DNA from: Thecamonas trahens ATCC 50062
Lineage: Eukaryota > Protista > Apusomonadida
Assembly: GCF_000142905.1 (NCBI RefSeq)
Contig: NW_013657663.1
Coordinates: 372,001-436,000, forward strand
Direction: 5' to 3'
Length of the DNA: 64,000 bases
Both the position numbers and the translations under genes were made by a program. The notes beneath the pieces are model-generated. The model searched no databases and was not told the origin of the DNA. It saw nothing but the letters and a program-made list of their open reading frames with translations. This document shows positions 8,110 to 31,574 of this stretch, piece by piece; positions within the stretch are counted from its first letter, which is position 1, and every line of letters begins with the position of its first letter.

Positions 8110-9776
8110 CTCGGGTTCGGGCGCCAACCACGCTCCGACCGACTTGATCGCGGTCCGCGCCTCGCGTGAGCTCACCGCCATGTTGAGGAAGCCGTGCGGG
8201 GTACCCGCCAGCCGCTCAAAGGCGGCTACTTTGCCGCCGCCGGCAGCCACGGTGTCCACAAACGCTACCGAGTCGTCGAGCAGCGGATCGCACTCGCCGC
8301 ACACCACGTACTTTCGGCTGGCCATGTCAGCCGACGCCAGTAGCCACGCCGGCGCCGCCAGTGGTGAAATTAGCGGGTGCGTCGCAGACACCGCCCGCAA
8401 CGTCGTGGGCACGTACGCTGTGTGGATGAGAGGGTTGAGCTCAGCTGGCAAGAGCGGATCGAGAGCAAGTGCCGCCCCCATGAGCCCGGCCCGTTGCCGT
8501 GCCCGGACCAGCGAGGGATAGATGAGCACAAGCGCGTCGATGGCTGGCAGCTCGCCGGCGAACGCCGTGTAGTCGCGAAGGACTGATGCGGTCGGACCCA
8601 GCTCCAGCATGAGTGCAGCATCGGCCTCGGGCTCACCGCGGGCGCGGCCACGCGCAGCAGCCACCAGCAGGCCGAGCGCTGCTGCAAGATTGCCTCCGGC
8701 TGAGTCGCCGACTACAGATATCGGAGCCGTCGAGCAGGAAGCGGCGATGGCATACAGCGCAAAGGCGTCGTTGAGCGCAAGCGGGAATGGCGCCTCGGGC
8801 GCAAGTGGGTAGTCCAGCGAGATAAAGAGCGTGCGCTCCATGCCTGGTGCCCTTGCCCAAGTCTTGAGGTAGTCTGCATGATCGGCTGGCGACATGGCCA
8901 CAAACCCGCCGCCATGCAGATGGATGACCAGCCGATAGGCGACTGTCTCACCTGCCGCCAGCGCCGCCACTGCCGCCGCCACCTCGACAGCATCGCCCTG
9001 GGCCACGACCAGAACCGGGAGGACTCTGTCTGATGCCGCCGCCGCCAACTGAGCCTCCACCGCTACCACCTCCGGACCACGCGAGCGCGGCTTGAGCTTT
9101 GTCAGACTGCGGATGATAACTGATGCGCCCGGCCCGGACCAGAGAGCGCGGATGGTGGCTGCAGCGAGGACAGGCGGCACGTTGTCAAGATCAGCATACG
9201 CCCGGCGGACAGCAGAGGCAGCTGCTGCCGGAAAGCATGCGTAGAAGGCCACCATGGGGAGCATGGCCAGCTCGAGGAGCAGCCGCGGGAGGATGTCAGC
9301 GGCGAGGGCCGCACCAGGCAGAGAGCAGGCGAACAGCATGGCGCCGTGGAGGGCAAGAAGCAGCCGCAGAGTGATCCGGTACGAGCCCAGCAGGCCGCTC
9401 CACACCACCTCAAACGGGAGCACTGTCGAGCGTGTCGTCGCCTGCGCCTGCGACTGTGTCATGATGACAATGGCAACAATATCACGAGAGGTGGCCCACT
9501 GTTGTTGTGTAGACCAGGAATGGCGGTACCAGTCATCAGCCATGCTGACTTGGTAGTCAGCGCGATGCGACGCCACAAAACGCGCGACGCTCACAACGAT
9601 CCATAGCCAAGACCTGTGAGACGAGGGATGATAGAAGAGAGGGAGATGGGGGAGGGAGGGGGGGGGCTCAAAGGCCGAGAAATTGCCTCTGACTGCGCCT
9701 TGCGGCGAACCGCAAGTGAGCCAGAGGGGTGCGTTGTCTATTGGGAGACGGCATCAGGGGCCTACGTTACGATCAT
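8104..9776 (-). CDS. Hormone-sensitive-lipase-like alpha/beta hydrolase (Abhydrolase_3); main exon 9613..8104, possible 11-nt first coding exon 9776..9766
   Basis: HGGGF oxyanion motif, GDSAGG nucleophile elbow, DPLLDDS and HGF. Acceptor CTCACAG at 9614. The first exon is tentative. Confidence 0.85.
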
Positions 9777-28400: not shown

Positions 28401-29880
28401 GAGCATGATGTTCGAAGAGGCCGAGCTCGAGGCAGCGCAGGTGTCTGCGGCTGTGCGCGACGTGATGCTCCAACTTGTGCCGTCGATTGCCATGTTTGCG
28501 ATGGTGTCGCGACCTAAGCCGCCGCCGTCGACGCTCACGACGTCGCCGTCGACTGGCAAGCTCAAGGAGGAGGCCGAGGAGGGTAGCAGTGAGGGCACAG
28601 TGCTGGACTTTGTGACGTTTGCGTCGCGGCACCGGCGGCTGCTGAACGCACTTGTGCGCGACAACGTTGAGCTGCTGCACTCGAGCTTTGCGGTCCTGCT
28701 CGAGCGGAAGGACGTGGCCAAGGCTGTGCTCGACTTTGACAACAAGCGGGTGCTGTTCCGTCAGGCTGTGCGCGAGGCGGCCGAGGCTGCGCGCGGCGGG
28801 CGGATCTCGATCCGTGTCCGGCGCGACCATGTGTTTGAGGACTCGTACCAGCAGCTCTGGTCGCTGCCTGCCAATCAGCTGCGCGGACGGATGCGCGTGG
28901 CCTTTGAGGGCGAGCCTGGTGTTGACGCAGGCGGCGTGACCCGCGAGTGGTACCAGGTGCTTGCGACGGAGATGTTCAACCCGGCGTACGGGCTGTTCGA
29001 GTCGTCACAGGAGGGCTCGACGTACCAGCCGAACGAAAAGTCGGGCGTCAACCCGGCGCACCTCAACTACTTTACGTTTGTGGGCGTGGTGCTCGGCAAG
29101 GCGCTGTGCGACGGCCAGGCACTGCCTGTCTACTTTACACGTGCGCTGTACAAACACATGCTTGGCGAGCGCGTGACGCTCGAGGACCTCAAGGCGTACG
29201 ACCCGACACTGTACGCCTCGCTTGTGTGTGTGCTCAACACGGCTGTGGAGGAGCTCGGGCTGGAGTACCAGAACTTTACGACGGCAGTCGATGAGTTTGG
29301 TGCACACAAGATCGTGCCGCTCGTCGACGGCGGCGAGGACATCCTGCTGACGGACGAGAACAAGGCCGAGTACGTGCGGCTCCTCGTGGAGTTCAAGCTC
29401 ACCACCGGCATCGCCGACCAGCTCAAGGCCTTCCTCGGTGGCGTGCACAAGCTCGTGGATCCCGAGCTGCTCGCCGTGTTTACGCCCAAGGAGCTCGAGT
29501 TGCTCATTGCCGGTCTTCCTACCATCGACATCAACGACCTGCGGGCCAACACCGAGTACGGCACCGGGTACAAGCCGTCGTCGCCGCAGATCGTGTGGTT
29601 CTGGGAAGTTGTCTCGGCCTTTGACCAGGAGCAGCTGGCCAAGCTCGTCCAGTTTGTCACCGGCTCGTCGCGGGTCCCGGTCGCCGGCTTCTCGGCGCTG
29701 CAGGGTATGCGTGGCATCCAGCGGTTCCAGATTCAGGCAACCAAGCGCAAGGACGCGCTCCCGACGTCGCACTCGTGCTACAACATGCTCGATCTCCCCA
29801 AGTACGGCTCCAAGGAAGAGCTCGAGCGCAAGCTGCTACTCGCCATCGGCGAGGGCTACGTCGGCTTTGGCTTTGCTTAG
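19415..29880 (+). CDS. HUWE1: HUWE1/Tom1/UPL1-type HECT E3 ubiquitin ligase (ARM region, UBA, acidic region, UBM repeats, HECT); split into ORFs 19415..25084 and 25081..29880
   Basis: UBA (MSMGVER..AALDWLF); UBM motifs IDEAFLAALPSEMRAEV and VNPEFLAALPPELQAEVL; HECT domain DFDNKR, GVDAGGVTREW, FVTGSSRVP, LPTSHSCYNMLDLP, GFGFA*. Confidence 0.93.
23452..23525 (+). repeat. Coding 18-bp tandem repeat (EPQPEP)n in HUWE1
   Basis: gagccgcagcccgagcct units, about 4 copies. Confidence 0.85.
26341..26496 (+). repeat. Coding 18-bp tandem repeat (EAEAGV)n in HUWE1
   Basis: gaggccgaggcagg(g/a)gtc repeated about 8-9 times. Confidence 0.9.
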
Positions 29881-29935
29881 CCTGCTGATAAATGCCTCTG
29901 GCATTGAGACAAGGTTGGGAGTTTACTCCGTGCGA

Positions 29936-30926
29936 TTAGCCCGACTTGAACAGGAGGACCGCGATCTGGCCGAGGTAGAAGTAGATGAACGCGCGGGTCT
30001 CGTGGGTCACGTACGAGCCAAAGTTCCGGCCCACGATGCAGTGCCAAGTCGGGTGGTGCTTGCGGTCGCTGTGAATGGAGAGATCCTTGTGAGTGAGGCA
30101 GGGGATATGGGGAGGTAGGGGAGAACGAGGAAGAGGAAGAGGAGGAGGACTTACACTAGATGCGGGTGACGAGTGCGGGCGGGGGGGGGGGAGGGAGGGA
30201 GGGGGGAGGAGGGGGAGTGAGTAGAGGGTGAGGGGTTGAAAAGGAGAAGGGGAAGCGGAAGAGGAAGCGAAAGGGTAGTGATGACAACGACGGGGAGAGG
30301 GAAACCGATGGTCACCATCTTCTTGGGCATGATCCTGGGCAACATCACCATGGGCAACATCACCATGTCATCGCCCTCGCATCATACGTACACTACACAC
30401 ACACACACACACACAGGTATACATCCATACGCATGTGCATATGGCAAGGGTTAAACGTGAGTCACAAGCACAAAGAGTGTTGGGTGATGGTGAGGGGAAT
30501 GGCAGCCAGAGAGGGTGGCAAGAGTGCTGGCGCGCCAACCGGAACCGGTGTGTGCTGCTGTGTGCTGTGTCGCCCACAAATGGTCAAACTGAGGCAAAAA
30601 ACGGTCCGGCGGGAAACGGAGGGAGCGCGCCGAGTGGGGGGGCAGGGGGGGGGGGAAAGGGGGGGGGGGGGGGGAATGGAGATAGAAAGGGGTGAGGGGA
30701 GTGGGGAGAGGGGGAGGGAGTGGTACATGCAGTGTATATGTAGTGTGTGTGATGGTGGTGGGAATGGTGGGAGGTACATGTCTATACGTACCTCCTTCTT
30801 GATGTGGGCAGCAATGTCCTTCTCGATCGAGTGGCGGTCAAGGGCAGCCATGGCGCAGTCGACGGCGTCCTGCTGCATGTCCTCAGACATGTCAGCGTTC
30901 TTGATCACAGCTTGCTGGGACGACAT
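29936..30926 (-). CDS. DYNLL1: Dynein light chain LC8, 89 aa; complement(join(29936..30068,30155,30392,30792..30926)), with two 1-nt exons
   Basis: Exon 1 [30 protein letters not shown]; last exon (C)[24 protein letters not shown]..LLFKSG*. 135+1+1+133=270 nt. All three introns are GT-AG with ACTCAC branch motifs. Confidence 0.93.
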
Positions 30927-31574
30927 AGTAGGTGAGGGAGACGAAAGTGTGAAATGAGTCGAGTATTGCTAATCCGCGCCCTTCCCACCCCGCCCCCCGC
31001 CCCTCCTCCCCTCCCCCAGCACTACCAAGCAACCTCCCGCCTGTCCCGCCGTTGGTCGCTCGGGTCGCCCGAACGCCCTCGGTCTGCCATGCAACCGATG
31101 GACAAAGTGGACAAAGTGGACGAAATGTCGTCTATTTTGTCCTCGTTCGTTCGTCCACCTCCGCCCTCCCACCAAACGGTCGGCCTCTTCTCACGTGCCA
31201 CTCAGCCTTGCTCCATTGCCAGCGATTCTGCTTAATTTCGTCTCGAGACCGACCAGGTACGGGGGGGGGGTAGCAGTGACGACCTGTGTGGAAGGAGAGG
31301 ACGCATAGAAGGACGGGAACCATTTAGGTGGAGATGGTGTGGGGGAGGGGGAGGAGGGGGTACAAGGGGTTGAGCTCTTCTCCTCCCCTTCCCCTTTGTC
31401 CCTTTGTAGCTGGTGTGAATAAGGTGGAGGAGGAAAGGGGGGGAGGGTGGCTGCCCAAACAACTTGCTTTGCCACGGGTGCCGAATCGGAGAGTAACGGC
31501 TGGGGGGAAGGGGGGGGGGGGAAGAAGGGGCGAACGTCATGAAACTCATGCGGAAGGGAGTGAGGAACAACAGC

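Follow-up and report, generated by a model that had tools for sequence, protein, structure and literature searches.

Two consecutive one-nucleotide exons very probably complete a single phenylalanine codon in the LC8 dynein light chain gene of Thecamonas trahens

The minus strand of the 64,000-nt window of Thecamonas trahens ATCC 50062 DNA considered here (the whole stretch analysed, whose first letter is position 1) very probably harbors a canonical LC8 (DYNLL-type) dynein light chain gene split into four coding exons of 135, 1, 1 and 133 nt (Table 1). The first coding exon ends with AAG AAG GAG at 30792, followed by GTACGT, and the last one starts after CACAG with C GAC CGC AAG and terminates at the stop codon TAA (29938-29936). 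Untranslated regions reach at least 30960 on the 5′ side and at least 29910 on the 3′ side. In between lie two cassettes, each a single T flanked by splice sites (gtgtag/T/gtacgt for T 30392 and atctag/T/gtaagt for T 30155), and the total coding length of 135+1+1+133 = 270 nt corresponds to 89 codons plus stop. The three introns occupy three consecutive nucleotide positions (G/T, T/T and T/C), so that each base of a conserved Phe codon comes from a different exon, and the mature mRNA reads ...AAG GAG TTC GAC CGC..., i.e. KKE-F-DRK. This arrangement had been proposed in a sequence-only reading of the window, and rereading the minus strand bore out every one of its sequence statements (exon ends, cassettes, 270 nt, 89 aa) along with an ACTCAC branch motif in each intron, present at 30462-30457, 30222-30217 and 30094-30089.

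Table 1. Features of the LC8 locus and of the other loci mentioned in the text. Plain positions refer to the window; L and G000 positions refer to other loci of the genome.
Feature	Position	Strand	Description
LC8 coding exon 1	30792..30926	minus	ATG at 30926 to GAG, 45 codons, ends in phase 0
LC8 intron 1	30393..30791	minus	399 nt: GTACGT ... ACTCAC (branch A 30458) ... TGTAG
LC8 first one-nucleotide exon	30392	minus	T, base 1 of the Phe codon; TAG/T/GTACGT
LC8 intron 2	30156..30391	minus	236 nt: GTACGT ... ACTCAC (branch A 30218) ... TCTAG
LC8 second one-nucleotide exon	30155	minus	T, base 2 of the Phe codon; TAG/T/GTAAGT
LC8 intron 3	30069..30154	minus	86 nt: GTAAGT ... ACTCAC (branch A 30090) ... 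CACAG
LC8 last coding exon	29936..30068	minus	C, base 3 of the Phe codon, then 43 codons and TAA
Predicted 10-bp hairpin (GGAGGUACGU / AUGUACCUCC)	30770..30795	minus	overlies the intron 1 donor
(GU)n just upstream of the intron 1 acceptor	30396..30414	minus	predicted pairing with (CA)n 30751-30732
Acceptor AAG/G of public model P0003	30085..30087	minus	rejected as main site
GH25-like lysozyme, tandem one-nucleotide exons	L023 1716-2008 (G000:C28, about 255215-255507)	minus	from homology and splice logic
Vps55 one-nucleotide exon candidate	L024 1968-2690 (G000:C47:68000-72000)	minus	competes with an annotated exon
Dynein_light paralogues and tandem-match frame	G000:C36:249590-249838, C48:69412-69582, C69:127201-127452, C25:251008-251595

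The two long exons were scanned separately against the 86-position Pfam profile Dynein_light (PF01221, curated cut-off 29.1 bits). Exon 1 matches profile positions 2-43 with 43.9 bits and the last exon matches positions 45-86 with 75.4 bits; both halves exceed the cut-off, as befits a member of the LC8 family. Given the profile gap between 43 and 45, exactly one residue is left unaccounted for by the two exons. LC8 is a highly conserved protein, and among the 174 fetched homologues that cover the position of the KKEFD Phe, 170 carry Phe and three carry Met, the sole exception being the public T. trahens protein P0003. The closest database relative, P0005, is 96% identical over exon 1 and reads KKEFDRKYHP. 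This transcript-derived protein is all that was found of a close relative, with no genomic DNA, and the other high-identity matches come from unrelated organisms because LC8 is so conserved. The T. trahens genome yielded no second copy of the LC8 gene. Three divergent Dynein_light paralogues are present, along with one 477-aa open frame containing two weak tandem Dynein_light matches.

Transcript structure was assessed by aligning Logan contigs of four public RNA runs to positions 29700-31300. A joint between 30068 and 30792 is found in contigs of three of these runs (X1, X2 and X3), which belong to three different studies and derive from seawater, subsurface and marine metatranscriptomes. Each joint skips 723 nt, has CT..AC ends and leaves exactly two letters, AA, between its sides when written along the plus strand. 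Since CT..AC is the reverse complement of GT..AG, these letters are TT in the mRNA sense (AAGGAG-TT-CGACC); loose ends in the same RNA contig output follow the plus-strand convention too. The flanks of the joint contigs have no mismatches to the genome: record 13 of X2 covers 156 nt across the joint (63+2+91), record 16 of X3 extends 51 and 105 nt to either side, and record 2 of X1 extends 151 and 25 nt, while records 16 and 22 of X3 show no mismatches over exon 1. Further RNA contigs match the LC8 5′ and 3′ UTRs exactly, and the RNA source is thus T. trahens itself or a near-identical strain, the runs being environmental metatranscriptomes, not labelled as T. trahens culture, with 100% identity including the UTRs.

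The mRNA therefore keeps two letters between the flanking exons at 30792 and 30068, as one-nucleotide exons at this place would leave them, and TT before the C of the last exon gives TTC, putting the Phe of the KKEFD motif right at the exon junction. The junction AAGGAG-T-T-CGACCGC, anticipated from the genome, is in this way recovered from contigs of three runs from three studies. Assembled contigs lose rare isoforms, so that minor use of other sites could escape this kind of analysis.

Where the two Ts come from was approached through the splice signals of the 723-nt gap. The only sites in it with a single nucleotide between AG and GT are the cassettes at 30392 and 30155. Over both strands, the 64-kb window contains two copies of YAGTGTAMGT, and both fall within the LC8 gap on the strand of the gene, for a shuffle expectation of 0.05 over the whole window and both strands (128 kb); the cassette pair is far beyond chance. 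Nowhere in the gap is a TT bounded by AG on its 5′ side and by GT or GC on its 3′ side; the sole AG-preceded TT, at 30588, is followed by TG. Enumeration of splice models shows that in-frame single-intron models from the strong donor at 30791 end at 30334, 30085 and 30058, and no single-intron model of the gap provides Phe.

On the strand of the gene, the gap contains three copies of ACTCAC, and a blind rule that goes from a donor to the next ACTCAY and takes as acceptor the first AG lying 8 nt or more beyond it yields precisely 30393, 30156 and 30069. Distances from branch A to AG are 65, 62 and 21 nt in introns 1, 2 and 3, respectively, the first two being on the long side, and all three branch-to-acceptor stretches are free of AG except for the AAG at 30086. 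Both cassettes thus present AG, one base and GT together with intron signals of their own. Judging by these signals, the two Ts have no canonical genomic source other than the pair at 30392 and 30155; each T is placed at its genomic position by splice-signal logic, not by direct observation, as no contig joins either T to one neighbor alone.

A pattern search for a branch motif plus cassette returned a pair of cassettes on contig 28, spaced 93 nt, within a gene for a GH25-like lysozyme. Its upstream exon ends with ...GAC GTG TAC ATG TT at L023 2008, followed by GTACGT. The cassettes read CACAG/T/GTACGC (T at L023 1898) and TACAG/C/GTACGT (C at L023 1795), and the downstream exon starts as CACAG/CC TGC TCT... 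at L023 1716. The resulting introns measure 109, 102 and 78 nt, each with ACTCAC or ACTCAT. The downstream exon has a weak GH25 match and 1558 homologues, and in 55 out of 79 homologues placed by motif search the pattern ..VD.Y.-FP-C..CG.. is present. In T. trahens, DVDVYM + (TT/T)(C/CC) + CSSCG supplies the corresponding FPC. Read in this manner, and confirmed by homology, the lysozyme gene would have the same tandem one-base exon architecture as LC8. In the public protein (P0239), translation begins from an ATG within lysozyme intron 2 and the upstream exons are absent, so the same class of annotation error conceals the N-terminal part of this protein. The lysozyme was not recovered by searching for the families PF00959, PF00062, PF05497 and PF01183.

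As for the mechanism, we propose that recognition of the LC8 introns would depend on intron definition only. All three combine a near-consensus donor (GTACGT or GTAAGT) with an ACTCAC of their own and an acceptor that would be the first usable AG beyond the branch, and an exon of one base could hardly be bridged by exon definition. Pairing of U1 at a cassette donor (-3 to +6) would mask the acceptor AG located one nucleotide upstream, and the two introns neighboring a cassette would therefore be engaged and removed one after the other. Either order of removal would regenerate a usable site, in a process resembling recursive splicing but with one base kept per step; the downstream intron perhaps goes first, as published plant microexon data suggest. 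Ordered or recursive splicing of the LC8 cassettes is plausible, although the RNA contigs showed no intermediates. Exon definition would be impossible for such cassettes, and even intron definition would have to be sequential because the donor of each cassette overlaps the acceptor one nucleotide upstream. Two adjacent one-base exons are nonetheless spliced accurately enough for the assembled mRNA of three unrelated samples to carry the correct form.

RNA folding adds two predicted elements to this scenario. A perfect 10-bp hairpin with one G-U pair and arms at 30795-30786 and 30779-30770 is predicted over the first donor (-15.5 kcal/mol, z -4.5, with none of 200 shuffles folding as well) and would fit a delayed removal of intron 1. 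A (CA)n/(GU)n helix is predicted to bridge intron 1 (421-nt fold, z -4.1), with a pairing that rests on microsatellite repeats, and it would fit the correct pairing of the intron 1 ends; both LC8 structures are predictions without covariation support. The cassettes themselves are predicted to be locally unstructured, and no counterpart of the donor hairpin is predicted in the lysozyme gene.

Inclusion of the LC8 cassettes looks constitutive since skipping either T shifts the frame. The same logic, together with a predicted hairpin over the first donor that could modulate splicing, might be taken to favor the on/off expression switch envisaged in the earlier reading, in which inclusion of the one-nucleotide exons varies with conditions and skipping yields frameshifted, degraded transcripts. 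Such regulation would add to the tandem-exon explanation rather than exclude it. We nevertheless regard it as improbable: only the fully included form was observed in the three unrelated samples, neither a regulator motif nor an alternative joint was found, LC8 is strongly conserved and the lysozyme gene has no equivalent hairpin. Nothing in the analysis supports a switch.

A source of TT outside the cassettes is more doubtful still. RNA contigs place TT between the exons without giving its origin, and the bases could in principle reflect an erroneous 2-nt deletion in the assembly where the last exon begins, a non-canonical 2-nt exon (cag/TT/tg at 30588) or addition after transcription. Under any of these, however, two perfect cassettes within 723 nt and on the right strand would be a coincidence (0.05 expected), and any use of them would also be harmful. 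The only AG-preceded TT has TG next to it, and lysozyme, an independent gene, shows an equivalent arrangement in which the bases differ (T then C). Nuclear insertional editing adding such bases is not known. We consider these origins very unlikely and retain the two cassettes as the source.

The public annotation (P0003, 94 residues, the database entry with identical exon 1 named 'dynein light chain 1, cytoplasmic [Thecamonas trahens ATCC 50062]') uses a single intron from 30791 to the AAG at 30087-30086 that replaces Phe46 by DLSIHS and, although in frame, bounded by GT..AG and deposited as the NCBI/UniProt version, it is almost certainly wrong as the main product, given that no contig of the four runs has a joint to 30085 whereas three runs have the 30068 joint with TT, that its AG lies 4 nt past the only nearby branch motif (branch A 30090), that its product is the sole outlier among 174 homologues with six residues inserted into a helix, and that the public annotation also misses the lysozyme cassettes. 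Gene predictors had been expected to overlook the one-base exons of LC8, and the NCBI model did so. With the tandem exons in place, a public sequence of a universally conserved dynein and hub protein is corrected in a reference protist genome, to 89 aa with Phe46 instead of 94 aa with the DLSIHS insert. Explicit support for one-nucleotide exons, runs of them included, is needed in aligners and gene predictors.

Single one-nucleotide exons are already known. One was demonstrated by mutagenesis in Arabidopsis APC11, whose authors reached the same model of sequential, recursive-like intron removal (PMC4674806), and single-nucleotide exons are reported in APC11 and VPS55 of land plants, where introns flanking microexons are removed consecutively with more reads for the downstream-first order (PMC8831610). 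Among fungi, a one-nucleotide exon in Fusarium CYP621A was described by its authors as the second example (PMC12940212), and Coprinopsis cinerea has 13 of them in 13 genes, one per gene (PMC12230235). Like those of LC8, the published cases consist of one base between canonical AG and GT inside what annotators took for a single intron; the base keeps the frame in a conserved motif, was missed by gene predictors and is backed by RNA across the joint. Unlike them, LC8 has two in succession, with three introns at three consecutive phosphodiester bonds and four exons meeting within one codon, and T. trahens is an apusomonad. A non-exhaustive literature search found no published report of tandem one-nucleotide exons and no papers on microexons in Thecamonas or apusomonads.

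Two further systems invite comparison. Recursive splicing at ratchet points, or zero-nucleotide exons, is described in Drosophila and vertebrates (as cited in PMC4674806, PMC8605326 and PMC6224609). Ratchet points resemble the LC8 cassettes in that an acceptor adjoins a donor, a usable 5′ splice site remains and removal is stepwise and intron-defined, but no base of them stays in the mRNA, and the introns they serve are very long. The LC8 cassettes, in contrast, keep one base per step, separate introns of 86-399 nt, and are coding and obligatory. With one base between AG and GT retained in the mRNA, an LC8 cassette behaves as a ratchet point would, yet falls outside that class. The stwintron, a fungal nested twin intron in which one intron is inserted into the donor, acceptor or branch site of another, does not describe the locus either: the LC8 introns stand in a row, adjacent and not nested, with donors, branch motifs and acceptors intact.

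Concerning intron origin, a degenerate-pattern scan of metagenome contigs returned 14 loci (L008-L021; fungal-like and one alga-like) with a plain phase-0 LC8 intron between Glu45 and Phe46. These genes share with T. trahens an intron exactly at the Glu45/Phe46 boundary (GAR/GT...AG/TTY GAY) but their next exon opens with the whole TTY codon, whereas in T. trahens the first T and the second T are each followed by another intron. Scanning metagenome contigs for an intron that splits off the last base of the Phe codon gave no match. In many other LC8 genes an intron seems to lie one codon further upstream, at Lys44/Glu45, judging by predicted proteins truncated there. On this comparison, the position of intron 1 is common to other eukaryotes (fungal-like and alga-like), and introns 2 and 3 look lineage-specific. 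The LC8 introns resemble each other in poly-C tracts only; no Rfam family was found in them, their DNA has no match elsewhere in the genome beyond poly-C, and no evidence was found of an origin by duplication or from an introner.

We speculate, with considerable reserve, that T. trahens and perhaps apusomonads generally might rely on pure intron definition with near-invariant GTACGY donors and ACTCAY branch sites, tolerating arrays of one-base exons as constitutive structure. Such arrays would stem from introns gained preferentially right beside existing junctions, for example by reverse splicing or repair-mediated insertion, with LC8 and lysozyme as two survivors. If this were true, the arrays would offer a natural system for measuring how closely spliceosomes can be spaced and in what obligatory order they assemble.

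One-base exons had also been suspected of being widespread in this genome, which found no support in the case of tandem cassettes. In the 28.7-Mb assembly, where the window corresponds to contig 17, 372001-436000, YAGNGTAMGT occurs 284 times vs 489 for the reversed control, and ACTCAY plus cassette gives 10 vs 12 and 12 vs 10 in comparison with controls; there is thus no enrichment of the cassette motif, either bare or with a branch motif, and the majority of its copies are ordinary sequence. When strict cassettes in tandem were sought at gaps of 25-55, 56-86 and 87-117 nt (the LC8 cassette gap is 228 nt), the scan gave the lysozyme pair as the only real match, adding one more real pair to that of LC8 and supporting tandem strict cassettes as rare but recurrent in the T. 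trahens genome. Two other tandem matches at gaps of 25-117 nt are repeats, and the other YAGNGTAMGT copy of the window, at 8411-8420, lies inside a 496-aa ORF.

Some individual cassettes also came up along the way. Well-formed CAG/C/GTACG cassettes with pyrimidine tract and branch motif exist on the minus strand at L025 ~1918 and L026 ~1768, outside ORFs and just downstream of stop codons, in UTR or intergenic sequence. A minisatellite on the plus strand (G000:C18:156762-156893) has a unit containing CAGAGTACGC, acceptor-like plus donor-like, and looks like a repeat rather than a gene structure. In Vps55, a candidate cassette CACAG/A/GTACGC (A at L024 2067) would make three exons contribute to one CAG codon. 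The annotated model (P0389) instead places a 29-nt exon behind a 41-nt intron, and either alternative keeps the frame; in land plants, a conserved one-nucleotide microexon lies near the VPS55 N-terminus (PMC8831610).
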